IMG/VR virus record: IMGVR_UViG_3300034358_000008
Span: 62,001-126,000 of that record
Direction: 5' to 3' (one strand)
Length of the DNA: 64,000 nucleotides
Shown: positions 3,632 to 63,209 of the stretch, one piece after another
How positions within the stretch are numbered: the stretch's first letter is position 1
Layout of the letters: every line of letters begins with the position of its first letter
Notes under the pieces: model-generated
The model's database searches: none
What the model was told of the DNA's origin: nothing
What the model saw: only the letters and a program-made list of their open reading frames with translations
Position numbers and translations under genes: made by a program

Positions 3632-4237
3632 ATGGAACTGCAACCGAGTAACGATGTACATGCTGAAGTAGATTTTCTGGAATTCCATAACACCAAGGGT
3701 ACCCTCCCAAAGGGTACGTACAAAGTGGTCGAGGCAGATGGCGATACCAGCTACGCTGTACTCGGTGACTTCCGTGGCGACATCAAGTGGTTTACTGAAG
3801 CTGAATACGAGTCTGCGATTCAAGAGCAGATGTTTAATCAGCGTCAAGATGATGCTCTTGATGACATCATGCGTAGCGGTGATGACTTTGACGATGATGA
3901 TCGGGAAGAGTTGATGGATAGCTGGGATGATGCAATGCATCGTGATCATGATGAACAACGTCGCTTTGATTCAAGAGCGGAAGACAGTAATATTACCGAT
4001 ACTGAATTCAACCAGTATGTTGATGATACGTACAAGTGCAACGAAGCTGCATCCGTAGCTTTCGATGAACGTATGGCTAAGCCTGTAAAGACTCTGGGTG
4101 AACTGTTGCGTGAATCGATGTTGGCCTCTCCATTGGCTACCGAGTCTGGCGGTTATGAGATTGCTACTCATGAAGACCAAGCTGCCTTCGCAGCAAAGCG
4201 TAACGCGTCGCTAAGACTGCGGGGGTTCAATGTTTAA
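3632..4237 (+). CDS. Highly acidic hypothetical protein
   Basis: AAGGA RBS; D/E-rich central region. Confidence 0.7.
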   Translation: MELQPSNDVHAEVDFLEFHNTKGTLPKGTYKVVEADGDTSYAVLGDFRGDIKWFTEAEYESAIQEQMFNQRQDDALDDIMRSGDDFDDDDREELMDSWDDAMHRDHDEQRRFDSRAEDSNITDTEFNQYVDDTYKCNEAASVAFDERMAKPVKTLGELLRESMLASPLATESGGYEIATHEDQAAFAAKRNASLRLRGFNV

Positions 4238-25010: not shown

Positions 25011-25012
25011 TC

Positions 25013-25047
25013 AATACAATTTATTTCAAATTTATATCATGGTTGGG
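25013..25047 (+). promoter_or_regulatory. Early promoter
   Basis: AATACAA-N13-TATATCAT. Confidence 0.7.
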
Positions 25048-27187: not shown

Positions 27188-27392
27188 TCTTCCAGCAGTT
27201 ATCCCACCATCATTTCACATACCCCTGGTATCGCCATATGGATCGACTGCACAAATGGTCCGTAATACCATGGCTAGGGTGTATGCTGGTATTATGTTAA
27301 TGGGTGTGACTCCAGGGGTAGCTCCAGAAGACCTTCCAAAGCATCGTAAGCTCATTGAGGACGTTCTGCATGTCACGAGTAAGCAAGGGTAA
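27180..27392 (+). CDS. Hypothetical protein
   Basis: AAGGA RBS. Confidence 0.55.
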   Translation: MTNLPAVIPPSFHIPLVSPYGSTAQMVRNTMARVYAGIMLMGVTPGVAPEDLPKHRKLIEDVLHVTSKQG

Positions 27393-27960
27393 GATCAAGC
27401 ACCTATGGGCATTGTACGGCGTTTGGGATATTGTTAGTCACCATCGGTTGATGGATGAATATACTCAATTCATTGCCACGGCAAAGCGATGGGAAGCGCG
27501 GTTGCATGACCCTAAGGTGGTTTCTCGGATATCGCGGTTCAGGGATGCAGTGGATCAACGTCTGGTTGAACCAATGGTTCAACAGATCGCTACCAAAGGT
27601 TACTACGATGGTTGCCGTAAGTTGGATAGTGAGTTTGATTTAGAAGTGTTCATTGATATCAAACGGATGGAAAACCTAACGCACCTGACCTATTCCCGTG
27701 GGAAGCATCACCATCATTCCCTGAAAGATAAAGTTATTACTTACGACATAAAGCCCGATATCCTAGAGGCGATGTCAAAACCAGTCATACGTAAGTCAAC
27801 TATGTCTGGTGCGATTTATGCAGAAGGTAGCCTTGACCGTATAGCGCATCTCGACATTGCCGACACCTACCCTAAGACAATTACCGTGACCGATGAAGAA
27901 TGGCTTGAACGGGAGTTGTGGGTTATTCACGGGAGATGTGATGAGACGTCCTCAACGTAA
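27370..27960 (+). CDS. SKGK-leader mosaic protein with DnaB-like and PolB motif A-like fragments
   Basis: MSRVSKGKIKHL; KGYYDGCRKLDSEFDLEVFI...RGKH; LDIADTYP. Confidence 0.6.
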   Translation: MSRVSKGKIKHLWALYGVWDIVSHHRLMDEYTQFIATAKRWEARLHDPKVVSRISRFRDAVDQRLVEPMVQQIATKGYYDGCRKLDSEFDLEVFIDIKRMENLTHLTYSRGKHHHHSLKDKVITYDIKPDILEAMSKPVIRKSTMSGAIYAEGSLDRIAHLDIADTYPKTITVTDEEWLERELWVIHGRCDETSST

Positions 27961-36628: not shown

Positions 36629-36716
36629 GTCGAAAACGTCCTATATCGCATTTTAGAGGCCTTCCTGCCTGCGTAGTAATACTCACAAGGGGTATACTAT
36701 ACGTGGGGAAGCATTT

Positions 36717-36751
36717 AATACATTTTATTTGGAATCTATATCATGAAGGTG
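36717..36751 (+). promoter_or_regulatory. Early promoter
   Basis: AATACAT-N13-TATATCAT-N5-TG. Confidence 0.7.
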
Positions 36752-42030: not shown

Positions 42031-42072
42031 TGGGCTACCTCCGGGTAGCCCACTTCTACCCTTTCTTTTTTT
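42031..42072 (+). terminator. Intrinsic terminator
   Basis: GGGCTACC-TCCG-GGTAGCCC plus T-run. Confidence 0.8.
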
Positions 42073-42110: not shown

Positions 42111-44270
42111 ATGGAACAAACTCACACCGATGTAAAACCAAATCCTTTTTACCAAGACATTTCTGAGTATCACCGCGAACTTGAAATCGTTAACCCACTG
42201 ATGCGTGACACAGCGCTGTATCTTTCGAGCATGACCGGAGATGATCTGGACAAGTGCTTGGCTTTCGTACAGTCGTCTATGGCCCCCGGTGGTCAGTTCG
42301 AGCTTAATGATCCTAAGACAATGATTCTGGATAAAGGTGAGAATGGTGATCGGGAGAAGAAGGTTATCCGGTTCAGCCAGTATCTAGGTCGAGTAAAGAA
42401 ACAGAACCTATTGCTCTCACCTAGTATGACCGTCTATTTACCAGAAGAAGTAAGAGCATCTACACATGCCAAGTACATCGAAGAAGGCGTTGCTAATCGT
42501 AAAGCAGTTAAGAAAGAGCAGATGCGGTTGGAAGGTGAGGGTACAACTGAAGCACTCGAATTAGCCCAAGTTCGTAAAGGCGAACAAGAGAACTTCAAAA
42601 TCAACAATAACTCCTACTCAGGAGCTACCGTTAGTGCTGCAACGATTCTCTACTACAAGTCTACTCACTCGAGCCTGACCTCTACTTGCCGTACTGCAAC
42701 TTCTTATGCTAACGCAAACAATGAGAAGTTCATCATGGGTAACCGTCACTACTACTCCCCAGAAGTGACTAAAGCTAACATGTTGAGTCTGGTCAATAAC
42801 ACTGACTTGAAACAACTTGAAGCTTGCATGCAGAAGTTCAAGATGCACTACCCAACAGCAGACGAGATCATCGACATGATTCTCTACTCGACTGCTCACT
42901 ACTGGTCCAACCCTGACTACACTGCACAGCTGCGTAAACTTGCAGCTGGTATGTCCCCGATTGGCCGTGCAGCTATCATGTACGTCGGTGACCTCTACCA
43001 TACTTACAAATACAACCCTACTTTGGTTAAGGGTTTCTTGAATGAGTTGTCGAGTGTTGGTACACCAGATAAAATTGTATCTAAAGAACAATACAACAAA
43101 TACGATGGCGACATGCAGTTGCTGGCAAGCTTCATTAACTTTGATATGATCAAAGGTCGTAACAACGAAAAGCTCGCTGAAGAAAACCCGGAAGTGTTTG
43201 ATCTGATCTACGCTACCGGTAACAATATCTCCCTAGTGTTGAATAAGTACGTTCTATTTATCAAGGCATTGTTCCTGACTAAGAACGTTCCTCCAAGCAT
43301 CCATGCATTCCCGACAGCTTATCGTCGTGCTGCCGTAATCTCAGACACTGACTCTACTATGTTCACCATGCAATACTGGGTGGAAGAGTTCTTTGGTCGA
43401 GTTACCTTTAGTGATGAAGCCAAGCGTCTGGTATTTGCTTTGGTGTTCTTGGTGTCCGAAGTGGTCATGCACATTCTGGCATTGCAGTCGATCAACATGG
43501 GCGTTACGTCCAAGAAGCTTCGTCTGCTCGCTATGAAGAACGAATACTACTTCGCAGTACTTAGTCTGACTACCCGCTCGAAACACTACTACGCGTCTCA
43601 GGATGCGGTAGAGGGTATCATGTTTGCTAAGGCCCGTATGGAAGTGAAGGGTGTTGGTCTACGAGACTCTAAGGTTCCGCCACGTATCAACAAAGCTGCT
43701 AAGAAGATGATGGAACACGTCATCACCACGATCAAACGTGAAGAGACGTTGGATCTTCCAGCCATGCTTAAGCAGATTGGCGACATCGAACGAAACATTA
43801 TGACTTCGATCTATACCGGTAAAGCGGAATACCTGACCACCGGTAAGGTTAAGAAGATTGATGCTTATAAATCGGAAGCTAACGCTACTTACGCTAAGTA
43901 CAAGTTCTGGAAAGAAGTGTTCGAACCTAGCTTTGGTTTCTTGGAAGCGCCGCCATACTCCTTCGTTAAGATCTCCGTGACTATCGATAACCGTACTCGT
44001 TTTGAGGCATGGATCGAAACTATCGAAGATAAGCCATTGGCCATGCGATTGAAGAAGTGGGCTTTGGAGAACAACAAGAAAGGCATCACTAACTTCCACG
44101 TACCAATGTCTGTGGTTGAGAACCATGGTATTCCTGAGGTTATCACCCGCGTAGCAAACGTACGTCAAACTATCGCTAACACGATGGGTAGCTTCTATCT
44201 GATCATGGAGTCCTTAGGGATCATGCTTCAGGATAAGAAGAACACCCGTCTCATTTCGGACTTTTACTGA
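42111..44270 (+). CDS. Family B DNA polymerase subunit (phiKZ gp50-like)
   Basis: Motif B KINNNSYSG, motif C ISDTDS, KHYY...EVKGV; GGAGG RBS. Confidence 0.88.
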   Translation: MEQTHTDVKPNPFYQDISEYHRELEIVNPLMRDTALYLSSMTGDDLDKCLAFVQSSMAPGGQFELNDPKTMILDKGENGDREKKVIRFSQYLGRVKKQNLLLSPSMTVYLPEEVRASTHAKYIEEGVANRKAVKKEQMRLEGEGTTEALELAQVRKGEQENFKINNNSYSGATVSAATILYYKSTHSSLTSTCRTATSYANANNEKFIMGNRHYYSPEVTKANMLSLVNNTDLKQLEACMQKFKMHYPTADEIIDMILYSTAHYWSNPDYTAQLRKLAAGMSPIGRAAIMYVGDLYHTYKYNPTLVKGFLNELSSVGTPDKIVSKEQYNKYDGDMQLLASFINFDMIKGRNNEKLAEENPEVFDLIYATGNNISLVLNKYVLFIKALFLTKNVPPSIHAFPTAYRRAAVISDTDSTMFTMQYWVEEFFGRVTFSDEAKRLVFALVFLVSEVVMHILALQSINMGVTSKKLRLLAMKNEYYFAVLSLTTRSKHYYASQDAVEGIMFAKARMEVKGVGLRDSKVPPRINKAAKKMMEHVITTIKREETLDLPAMLKQIGDIERNIMTSIYTGKAEYLTTGKVKKIDAYKSEANATYAKYKFWKEVFEPSFGFLEAPPYSFVKISVTIDNRTRFEAWIETIEDKPLAMRLKKWALENNKKGITNFHVPMSVVENHGIPEVITRVANVRQTIANTMGSFYLIMESLGIMLQDKKNTRLISDFY

Positions 44271-44456
44271 TGGATAAATTCAAAGACAAAATTGACGGTA
44301 TCGTCGAAGGTCTCCACATCTTTAAACCGCAGTCTTGGCAACATCGCAGTCAGGGGGATGCAAAAAGGGTACTCATGGCAATCCTTACCTTAAGAGAAAA
44401 CCTAGTCGGTCTGTCTCAAGAAGATTTTGAAAGAACTATCCTTAAGGCCCTTGAGT

Positions 44457-44491
44457 AATAGAACCCCTTTCAAGTTTATATCATGCACTCG
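44457..44491 (+). promoter_or_regulatory. Early promoter
   Basis: AATAGAA-N13-TATATCAT. Confidence 0.7.
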
Positions 44492-44536
44492 TATCCTAAA
44501 CAGATGTGAGTGCATCTATTTCGTCTTGAGGTTTAT

Positions 44537-44707
44537 ATGACCAAGAATGATCCTGAAATCCGAAAGCTTTTTGAACGTATGCGTAAGTTCACCCGTAATA
44601 ACAAGGTTGTGATGATCACAGCCAAAGCCTCTCCGATGACTCAAGCAGAAATCGATAGGGCTAACTCCATTCCTTACACCTGTGATTACATTGGGATGCT
44701 TCGATGA
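44537..44707 (+). CDS. Mini-protein resembling DnaB helicase motif fragments
   Basis: IRKLFERMRKFT...VVMITA; CDYIGML; GAGGT RBS. Confidence 0.5.
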   Translation: MTKNDPEIRKLFERMRKFTRNNKVVMITAKASPMTQAEIDRANSIPYTCDYIGMLR

Positions 44708-45848
44708 CATTTAACGTATCTATCGTAGATAAGGTCTATGGTGAATGGTATCTAATCGCACCAACCAAAAATGATCTATGTATGCTGCTCACCAGACTTG
44801 AAGCTGAAGACGCCGTTGAGCGCTACAAAGTAGTAGGTCACGATGGAAAACATTATGCGGCCATCGCCTATGAATTTGGGTGGATGCAAGATAATTACAA
44901 GAAGGGCTATTGAATGAACGATGCAGCCAAACTGAAAGAACTGATGACCCCAGCTAAGATGAATGGTGCGGTCTACGATAACCTATTTCAACTGGCACGT
45001 TGGGGTGCTCGTGAAGTAGGTGAGATCCCATCCAAGGGTCACATGCAAGAACTGGTTCAGAATAAATGGGTTCGGTTCAATGGGGATGAGGAGAAGTGCT
45101 GGACCATCACTGACGCTGGCCTACAAGCATTTCTGGAAGCTTACTCTAAGATCCCTAACCCACACTACAAGATCTTTGGTACCCTCCGTATCGGCTTTGC
45201 AGAGCGTTGTGGTAATGGTGAACTGGATGGTACGCCTATCCACTGTTTGGGTGGTTGCTTTGATTGGGCACGTGAAAACGTCTTCCTTAATAAGGTACTG
45301 AACTGGGCTGAGAGCTTCGGTTCTTATGACTACGCCACATTCGACTTCATTCATCCAGTGACTAAGGTTAAGACCCACTTGAAACCGGGTGACTGGGTTG
45401 TCCTGTCCGAAGACCATAACCACACTGTTCACAAACTGAGTGAAGATAATTGATGGACCTCATTAAAACAGCTGATTCTCGTTTCATGCGTAAAGGCGAC
45501 CAAGGTATCTTTGTTAATCATGTCCCTATGACTAAAGAATACCACATCACTGTTGAGAAAGAGTATTCGTGTGCAATCACCGAAGCTGTTGCCGGTTATC
45601 AAATTACTTGCAATCTGTGTAATGATCTCGGTTCGCATGCGGTACATAGTAAGTCGTTTGACATGTTCAGCGGTGGCTATACTACCGTTTACGCACTCGT
45701 TCCACGTGATGAGTACATCCGCCGAGCTAATACCATCCATGCACACGACGTGCTTACCTTAACCGATAAGTTCACCTTGGATATGGAAACACTTAATACT
45801 CGACAGGCTAAACGACTGGAGGTTGCTAATGTTACCGCATCCGTTTAA
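44704..45848 (+). other. Hypothetical ORFs 44704-44913, 44914-45453, 45450-45848
   Basis: Coupled ORFs. Confidence 0.65.
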
Positions 45849-47199
45849 GACAGATACATGGGTTGAAGGTGAGCGTTCGAATCACGCTAATCTTTGCAAT
45901 GAGATCGATCTACCTCAATCGGGAAGCGATATCTGCGTGTTGGGTATGAAGCCTTCGATGTTGAAGTACATAGCGCTCAATAACCAGATCCATCAACATC
46001 AGGTACATGGTCGGGTATGGAATCTGATTGGTGACCCTAACCTGAAGATGCTCTTTAGTTCATACTCGGGCTCAACTCCAGATCAACGCATGGACCCAGA
46101 AGCTGTAATGGATCTGGCTCGTGAACTCTATGATGAACATGAGGAAGATCTGACTGAGCTTTACAACAATTTAGGTTCACTGCGCACTATCCGTGCAATC
46201 GAACAACTTGAACGACTAAAACTCTTCGGCTCACTCGCAATCAATCAAAACTTCAAGGAACAAGGTATCATGCAATCCACAACTGAACAAATTGCAAAAC
46301 TGACCCAAGCTCAACCACACGGTCTTCGCCGTGGCGAACTGGCAATGATCTCCTCTACTGCCAATACCGGTAAGTCATCAGATACAGATGAGCTGATTCG
46401 TCTGCTGGAAGAAGCTGTTCCGGCTGTGGATAATATTGGTCCTGCCGGCACGCAGGGTGATCGTGGGGAACACGCACCTAAACTGCAATCGTTCGACAAG
46501 CCTTCTAAGGTTAAACGTAAGAAGTCCAAGCCTAAATCTAACCATCTCCCGAACATGCGTAACGCTCGTACCAAACGTGTACTGGGTGCAACCATCCTGA
46601 ACATGCTGGGTAAGGTTCAACAAGATACCCAAGACAGCTACAAGCGTTCTCTTTTGAAAGAGATTCCACTGGCTGACTTCGTAGAACTGGCATCGGGCGA
46701 GAAGCTGCCGGACTATCAGGCTAACCTGTTGAACGCAATGCAGGCTAAAGCTGATCCAACTGCCCCAATCGTTGAACGCGTTAACGCTGGCACCGGTATT
46801 GGGCTGGACATCATTCAGAAAGCATTCGATGGTTCTGTGGCAACTGATGAGCGCTTGATCGCCAATGACCAATTCGTAGAGGCATTGTATCCAGGTACAC
46901 TCGAGCGTGAGGCAAATGTAGGTCGTGGTCTGACTGCACATGTCTTGACTTTCGATGATGCACCAGAACAACTGTCTAACGAAGAACGTCTGGCTATCTT
47001 CGAAAAGAATGTTGACGAAGCTTTGGTTAAGTACATCTCCCCGGAACTGTTCCCAGAAGAACTGTCCGAAGAGAAACGTACTGAAATCATCGCATTGGTT
47101 AAGGCAGATGTGATGGAACGCAATTCGTCTATCGATCGTCAAAGCATCGTAACCACCGCAATGAGTATCCTGCATCCGCTGGACCCAATCGCTGGCTAA
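45829..47199 (+). CDS. Mosaic protein with RNR-, PolB-, DnaB-, collagen- and terminase-like motif fragments
   Basis: GGAGG RBS; motifs detailed in findings. Confidence 0.65.
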   Translation: MLPHPFKTDTWVEGERSNHANLCNEIDLPQSGSDICVLGMKPSMLKYIALNNQIHQHQVHGRVWNLIGDPNLKMLFSSYSGSTPDQRMDPEAVMDLARELYDEHEEDLTELYNNLGSLRTIRAIEQLERLKLFGSLAINQNFKEQGIMQSTTEQIAKLTQAQPHGLRRGELAMISSTANTGKSSDTDELIRLLEEAVPAVDNIGPAGTQGDRGEHAPKLQSFDKPSKVKRKKSKPKSNHLPNMRNARTKRVLGATILNMLGKVQQDTQDSYKRSLLKEIPLADFVELASGEKLPDYQANLLNAMQAKADPTAPIVERVNAGTGIGLDIIQKAFDGSVATDERLIANDQFVEALYPGTLEREANVGRGLTAHVLTFDDAPEQLSNEERLAIFEKNVDEALVKYISPELFPEELSEEKRTEIIALVKADVMERNSSIDRQSIVTTAMSILHPLDPIAG

Positions 47200-47232
47200 A
47201 CATAATCCCCTCCTTCGGGAGGGGCTTTATTT
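47200..47232 (+). terminator. Intrinsic terminator
   Basis: CCCCTCC-TTCG-GGAGGGG. Confidence 0.8.
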
Positions 47233-50368: not shown

Positions 50369-50444
50369 TTGGTTATCCCTATAAATTGTTAAAACTATAG
50401 AATGGGCCTAGTCAGTATATATCATTCTCTTCCTTTATAAGGGC

Positions 50445-50479
50445 AATAGAATTTATTTCAAGTTTATATCATAGCTGTA
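50445..50479 (+). promoter_or_regulatory. Early promoter
   Basis: AATAGAA-N13-TATATCAT. Confidence 0.75.
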
Positions 50480-51494: not shown

Positions 51495-51677
51495 AAGAAA
51501 TACCTTGTGGTGGTATCTAGTAAGAGCAATGCCGTTATGGATTGTCGCTACAGATTTATTCCCTGATCAGATTCAATTCTAGTTAAGGAATACTTTTTGT
51601 AGTATGTTATGTAACACTCTAATCAGTGTTACGACCACAGGCAACTATAGCCTGTCGCTCAGGTCTATAACGCCGTT

Positions 51678-51712
51678 AATAGAAAAATCTTCAGATTTAT
51701 ATCATACACGTG
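51678..51712 (+). promoter_or_regulatory. Early promoter of chmA
   Basis: AATAGAA-N13-TATATCAT-N5-TG. Confidence 0.75.
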
Positions 51713-63100: not shown

Positions 63101-63174
63101 GTCCCTTCTTTAACATACGGCGATCTTGAGTTTAACTCAGGGTTGCCATATGCCCTCCCGCTCGGTTCAGAGCC

Positions 63175-63209
63175 AATAGAAATTATTTCAGATTTATATC
63201 ATACAGGCG
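63175..63209 (+). promoter_or_regulatory. Early promoter
   Basis: AATAGAA-N13-TATATCAT. Confidence 0.75.

Follow-up and report, generated by a model that had tools for sequence, protein, structure and literature searches.

Can a protein of only 56 residues be a rearranged piece of a replicative helicase, and what would such a piece do? This question is raised by a small ORF in IMG/VR virus record IMGVR_UViG_3300034358_000008, which a preliminary description made from the sequence alone had called a mini-DnaB mimic and the first gene of an early operon. The window analyzed here, i.e. the whole stretch of 64,000 nucleotides, covers bases 62001-126000 of this 324,912-bp record, which was assembled from a peat metagenome. 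The DNA polymerase gene just upstream of the ORF (42111..44270, Pfam divDNApol) is about 80% identical in DNA to that of Pseudomonas phage 201phi2-1, the nearest phage, which indicates that the genome is a chimallivirus (nucleus-forming jumbo phage). No alternative genetic code was needed. The ORF and its surroundings contain the following features:

44456..44484 (+), a promoter-like motif (AATAGAA, spacer, TTTC, AAGTTTATATCAT), 53 nt upstream of the ATG
44483..44515 (+), a stem-loop with a weak T-rich tail, which overlaps the 3' end of the promoter-like motif
44537..44707 (+), the 56-aa mini-protein gene, whose stop overlaps the next start (ATGA)
44704..47199 (+), four tightly packed or overlapping downstream ORFs of the same gene string (69, 179, 132 and 458 aa)
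47207..47224 (+), a strong intrinsic-terminator-like hairpin (7 pairs, 6 of them G-C, followed by a T-rich tail), which closes the gene string

To determine whether the ORF is a gene, its sequence, conservation and distribution were examined. The ORF starts with the ATG at 44537, ends with the TGA at 44705-44707 and has a GAGG 5 nt upstream of the ATG. Against two metagenomic relatives (loci L021 and L022), dN/dS is 0.088 and 0.061, with synonymous sites near saturation, which indicates strong purifying selection. Word searches found 31 relatives, and a profile search of 1.84 billion representative proteins found 68 clusters at E<=0.001, mostly of 51–66 aa. In an alignment of 28 family members, Thr28, Lys30 and Asp50 are invariant, and Arg16, Pro46 and Tyr51 are nearly so. 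The mini-protein matches the family profile over its full length, with the conserved Thr-x-Lys and Asp-Tyr positions. No Pfam family and no named PHROG covers this family; phrog_22250, of unknown function, is hit weakly by five members. The possibility that the gene is a decaying remnant of a partial DnaB duplication without a function of its own is very unlikely. Phage genomes do carry gene fragments, and Pseudomonas phage Psa21 (locus L005, about 3990-4075, + strand) holds an unannotated frame with the helix-strand half of the module (56% identity over 25 aa) but no Asp-Tyr motif, which runs into the dCTP deaminase gene, overlapping its start, and may be a degraded copy or a differently ended protein. 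However, the low dN/dS, the conserved length, the invariant residues across genera and phage types, and the presence of a ribosome-binding site and a promoter-like motif argue against decay.

The gene is accessory. Named phages that carry it are the PA1C group of Pseudomonas aeruginosa phages (54 aa, directly after the DNA polymerase gene), Erwinia phage AH04 (gp34) and Xanthomonas phage BUDD, in all of which it is annotated as hypothetical. A tblastn search did not find it in 201phi2-1 or Viktualia, and apart from the PA1C-group phages, AH04 and the partial match in Psa21, no other phage record matched in that search, which indicates that it is not a general replisome part. In the relatives' loci L022, L023, L027 and L028 it again follows divDNApol, after 0–3 small ORFs, whereas in L021, whose contig starts inside an unsearched upstream gene, it heads the same downstream gene order; the order of the downstream ORFs is the same in L021, L022, L023 and L028. 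The 62-aa ORF between the polymerase gene and the mini-protein gene (44270..44458, +; phrog_33585) varies in copy number, with one copy here, two in 201phi2-1 (gp85, gp86; L001 6092-6533) and three small ORFs in L022 (3334-3922). The 179-aa ORF two genes downstream (44914..45453, +) matches phrog_4365 and has a weak PadR-like winged-helix hit (E 0.16), and may be a DNA-binding protein.

To find the helicase with which the mini-protein should be compared, the whole genome was searched with Pfam DnaB_C (PF03796), which found nothing. A Walker A pattern scan of long ORFs followed by a Pfam scan found other ATPases but not DnaB. As chimalliviruses are reported to have a divergent DnaB (PMC7824862, PMC13648687), a motif scan was applied, which located it at genome 191214..192743 on the minus strand, outside the window. 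The protein (P0008) is 509 aa long and matches Pfam PF20307 (divDNAB) at E 9e-151, and its AF2 model (pLDDT 87) matches solved DnaB structures such as 2r6a, 4esv and 9dls at E about 1e-16. A Walker B strand (model strand 348–356) ends in Asp356-Tyr357 and is followed by a helix (373–386) and a strand (392–399) that ends in His-Gln. Both motifs named in the preliminary description are thus present in this helicase, and two segments of the mini-protein correspond to them:

44552..44629 (+), residues 6–31, a helix plus strand homologous to DnaB 373–398 (the helix between Walker B and H3, plus the H3 strand)
44675..44701 (+), residues 47–55, a Walker-B-like strand with the invariant Asp50 and the near-invariant Tyr51, matching DnaB 353–361

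BLASTP of the mini-protein against this helicase aligns residues 7–44 with 374–411 (E 0.001). Profile-profile comparison (hhalign) of the 28-sequence family with a 43-sequence DnaB alignment aligns mini 6–31 to DnaB 373–398 (score 44.5, P 5.8e-7, probability 92%), and the second-best hit places mini 47–55 on the Walker B strand 353–361 (P 0.006; 0.001 when the C-terminal piece is searched alone). When the family alignment is circularly permuted in silico, one contiguous 39-column alignment to DnaB 353–398 results (score 60.3, P 7.7e-10, probability 96.5%). In contrast, 300 column shuffles gave a mean score of 13.4 (sd 2.6, maximum 27.6), and the reversed alignment scored 15.3. Among all 3200 six-frame ORFs of the genome, DnaB is the best non-self hit of the family HMM (E 0.01; 0.0012 for the permuted form; next hit 0.4–0.6), and in the reverse search the mini-protein is the third hit of the DnaB profile (E 0.02). 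The AH04 member, searched by tblastn against all phage records, hits after its own family almost only the DnaB-like helicases of RAY-like phages (E about 0.9, residues 1–43). The absence of any DnaB hit had been named beforehand as the outcome that would refute the resemblance, and this outcome was not observed.

The mini-protein is nevertheless not itself a DnaB-family helicase by sequence criteria. It has no Pfam hit at E<=1, and although divDNAB is the family most often hit when the 28 members are scanned, only three members hit it, with a best E of 0.0086 that falls below the family cut-off. It is 56 aa long against 509 and lacks the N-terminal domain, the P-loop, H4 and the arginine finger, with a counterpart only of DnaB 353–398. 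Within this unit it agrees residue for residue with DnaB at several near-invariant positions (Arg376, Leu378, Arg383, Asp356 and Tyr357), which includes the Asp-Tyr that ends the Walker B strand. The sensor tip differs: in DnaB the His is nearly invariant and the Gln invariant, whereas the mini-protein family has Lys-Ala at these positions.

A convergent or chance resemblance was also considered, because any amphipathic basic helix followed by a hydrophobic strand would look similar and the alignments are short (26 and 9 columns). No full-length DnaB reached E 0.001 in the database-wide HMM search, so that the link rests on profile-profile scores and intermediates; the PA1C member shows no BLASTP similarity to its own DnaB, and a PDB sequence search with the family profile gave only insignificant hits to an ASFV histone-like protein (E 3.7). 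An ESM Atlas feature search gave no usable hit. However, the observed scores lie about 12 and 18 sd above the shuffle controls, DnaB is the reciprocal best hit within the genome, the second motif lands on the strand adjacent to the first hit, and AH04 gives an independent hit. Natural permutants and intermediates further disfavor this reading, which we consider unlikely. The database search returned five proteins (P0150, P0169, P0171, P0209 and P0211) with the two halves in DnaB order, i.e. the Asp-Tyr strand first, then a linker, then the helix and the Thr-Ala-Lys strand. Their alignment matches DnaB 354–396 contiguously (P 4e-9) and the artificially permuted family at P 2e-21 (probability 99.4%), as for a circularly permuted pair, and P0169 alone gives a contiguous BLASTP alignment to DnaB 356–395 (E 0.011). 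The metagenomic protein P0193 (214 aa) begins with the mini module and continues collinearly into the DnaB H4/arginine-finger region (DnaB 411–459; alignment over 373–459, P 1e-5). Together, these make common descent from the β3-α-β4 unit of a DnaB-type helicase the only economical reading. The module can also be fused to other sequence, as it appears as a C-terminal or internal domain in the longer metagenomic proteins P0184 (243 aa), P0180 (107 aa) and P0160 (100 aa).

One detail is less settled. BUDD has a canonical gp41/DnaB_C helicase, which shows that the family is not confined to chimalliviruses; a second DnaB_C hit in BUDD (locus L026) lies antisense within a large structural-looking ORF and was dismissed as spurious. 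The 79-aa BUDD member P0181 (locus L020, 5001-5240) joins H3-like, Walker-B-like and Walker-A-like pieces in the reverse of their order in a helicase, the last being a stretch like the strand before Walker A plus a P-loop-like G-K-S. BLASTP aligns P0181 residues 28–70, which include the Asp-Tyr motif region, collinearly with the start of the ATPase domain of BUDD's canonical helicase, i.e. with the segment before Walker A rather than with Walker B (E 1e-4). hhalign still places the Asp-Tyr motif on Walker B, and the mini-protein's C-terminal strand also hits the Walker B of BUDD's canonical helicase, so the Walker B assignment appears probable but not certain.

The preliminary description further proposed that four helicase motifs are spread over three accessory genes, with a Walker A piece in the large ORF of the same gene string. 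The two other regions concerned are as follows:

27355..27960 (+), a separate accessory ORF (201 aa) whose residues 72–134 are a copy of DnaB 411–465 (H4/arginine-finger region)
46321..46377 (+), residues 167–185 of ORF 45823..47199, a piece resembling the strand before Walker A plus a G-K-S triplet

The first is clear: the DnaB HMM gives E 8e-17, BLASTP gives 51% identity over 49 aa (E 5e-13), and PF20307 positions 265–328 match at E 1.6e-14, above the family cut-off, while the rest of the protein has no match. With this identity it is a much younger copy than the mini-protein. The second is only weakly supported. The DnaB HMM gives E 13, and hhalign to DnaB 218–233, the right place, gives P 1e-4 for the segment and 0.0027 for the whole ORF, although the piece clearly matches the C-terminal half of P0181 (P 4.8e-8). 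It lies in a variable insert that a pattern search did not find in L027, L028, 201phi2-1 or Viktualia; as L027 and L028 do have the mini-protein, co-occurrence is not strict. PA1C has a similar piece at a different position in the homologous ORF. Two of the three accessory genes therefore carry well-supported DnaB pieces, and the third is a lead.

To examine the transcription context, the motif upstream of the gene was searched throughout the genome. Its core decamer TTTATATCAT occurs 10 times in the 325-kb genome, all on the + strand, and the shorter octamer TATATCAT occurs 17 times on the + strand and once on the - strand, with most + sites sharing the extended motif in intergenic positions. 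Within the window the ~29-nt motif (AATAGAA, spacer, TTTC, then A-R-R-TTTATATCAT) lies at 25012-25040, 36716-36744, 44456-44484, 50444-50472, 51677-51705 and 63174-63202 (all +), 25–70 nt upstream of start codons, and at most sites a G lies seven bases after the motif. The motif is conserved in L021-L023 while the flanks diverge. It resembles the AR9 early, virion RNA polymerase consensus AAATATATATTAT-6N-G, with its start seven bases downstream (PMC5312081), and phiKZ early promoters are likewise AT-rich (PMC10914365), which makes early timing plausible but inferred. Among sequencing runs, only DNA runs from peat metagenomes contain the stretch and no RNA run does, so that translation is supported by purifying selection alone. 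The hairpin at 44483-44515 has 13 pairs, and its stem is kept by compensatory substitutions in L022 and L023. It may be a 5' hairpin; if transcription starts about seven bases after the motif, and thus inside it, the hairpin would form only in read-through RNA from the polymerase gene and could act as its terminator, which is speculation. Between the mini-protein gene and ORF 45823, the only terminator-like site listed is weak (45236-45254, inside the 179-aa ORF). Strong terminator-like hairpins at 42043-42061 and 47207-47224 (+) bracket the block from the polymerase gene to ORF 45823, and the second is palindromic and scores on both strands.

The observation in the preliminary description is thus confirmed: the ORF, both DnaB-like motifs and their permuted order are all as described. 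Its interpretation is partly supported, in that the DnaB resemblance, the position first after a promoter-like motif and the DnaB fragment of ORF 27355 hold, whereas functional mimicry and early expression remain hypotheses and the Walker A piece is weak. In our best explanation, the gene encodes a DnaB-derived microprotein: an ancestral phage copied the Walker B strand/helix/H3 strand unit of the RecA-type core of a DnaB-family helicase into a free-standing gene, the unit was circularly permuted in most descendants, including this one (helix, H3 strand, linker, Walker B strand), and the Asp-Tyr was kept while the sensor His-Gln became an invariant Lys followed by Ala. We regard these steps as shown by the analysis, whereas transcription from its own virion-polymerase-type promoter as the first of five genes, early timing, binding to any partner and the mode of action are inferred. 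In a β-α-β unit, the Asp-Tyr and the Thr-x-Lys would lie side by side at the edge where RecA-type folds bind nucleotide. The AF2 model of the monomer is only moderately confident (pLDDT 69.8) and has helices at 6–21 and 36–44 but no strands. The most likely mode of action is that the two hydrophobic strands cannot fold alone, and that the protein would work by pairing with a DnaB-type protomer (of the phage, a co-infecting phage or the host) or with other helicase-derived pieces such as that fused to it in BUDD, with its Asp/Thr/Lys cluster at or near a nucleotide site, modulating or poisoning ring assembly or ATPase activity. This mechanism is tentative (about 0.35–0.4), as the copied elements are buried core strands in DnaB rather than a surface that a mimic would normally present, and a predicted complex with DnaB 150–509 gave no verdict and counts neither for nor against. 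We put a real, selected gene of DnaB origin at about 0.9, and the whole statement including the mechanism at about 0.4.

Two other functions are possible but less likely. The protein may be an autonomous tiny α/β domain of DnaB ancestry that now works without any helicase, self-associating into a small parallel sheet and using the Asp/Thr/Lys cluster and its basic helix to bind a phosphate-bearing ligand, nucleic acid or another replisome protein such as the neighboring polymerase. The regular helix-strand-helix-strand pattern of the permuted order, the survival of both orders in nature (as expected if the chain ends lie close together in a compact unit), the invariant residues where RecA-type folds bind ligand, the company of the polymerase gene in seven loci and a net charge of about +5 counted from the sequence are consistent with this. 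However, the monomer model forms no sheet, and 56 residues without a P-loop is very small for a ligand site. Alternatively, and more doubtfully, it may be a decoy or weapon that titrates a host defense factor or a competitor's factor recognizing the phage helicase, or poisons the helicase of a co-infecting chimallivirus. The patchy distribution, the location in a variable block of small genes behind a putative early promoter, the second DnaB fragment in another accessory gene and the occurrence in unrelated phage types such as BUDD suit this reading, but they are purely circumstantial. No defense system is known to us that senses this buried part of DnaB, and the DnaB segment is nearly invariant across chimalliviruses, so that self/non-self discrimination by this segment would be hard.

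A literature search found no description of such helicase-derived microproteins, although microproteins derived from oligomeric proteins are known. MicroProteins such as plant LITTLE ZIPPER and animal Id proteins are small paralogues of part of an oligomeric protein that act as dominant-negative partners; like them, the mini-protein is a short free-standing copy of one piece of a larger self-assembling protein, lacks the catalytic parts and is kept under selection, but classical microProteins copy the interaction domain, whereas here a core β-α-β unit is copied and binding to the parent is hypothetical. Helicase loaders and inhibitors (lambda P, DnaC and DciA, solved with DnaB in 9oa1, 6qel and 8a3v) are also small, often phage-encoded and early, and act on DnaB rings, but none of them derives from DnaB itself, and the accessory status of the mini-protein argues against an essential loader role. 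ORF 27355, P0193 and P0181 show the same phenomenon of a helicase piece embedded in a small or unrelated protein, with other or additional pieces; P0193 and P0181 contain the mini module itself. Laboratory-made minimal β-(P-loop)-α prototypes of P-loop NTPases show that fragments of about 55 residues from this fold class can oligomerize and bind phosphate ligands, but those contain the P-loop, of which only the BUDD relative carries a similar stretch.

Chimallivirus replication is poorly understood, as a divergent DnaB is known but no loader, primase or classical clamp had been recognized (PMC13648687, PMC13648698). An unlikely but not excluded possibility is that phages maintain a toolkit of single DnaB core motifs (Walker A strand, Walker B strand, H3, H4/arginine finger) cut out, shuffled, sometimes fused, as in BUDD, and spread over accessory early genes, which either assemble with each other into a split, minimal nucleotide-binding unit or insert into DnaB rings to open, cap or poison them. 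That would be a new class of helicase regulator or inter-phage weapon, and might also be the missing loader-like activity of chimalliviruses. The homologue in the cultivable Pseudomonas aeruginosa phage PA1C, protein QBX32201, makes the question testable at the bench. A conserved, selected microprotein descended from the catalytic core of the helicase, encoded next to the polymerase gene and probably expressed early, is a concrete candidate for a helicase regulator or anti-helicase factor. It also shows that very small pieces of the RecA-type fold, in either circular order, can persist as independent genes, which bears on how minimal α/β units fold and evolve.
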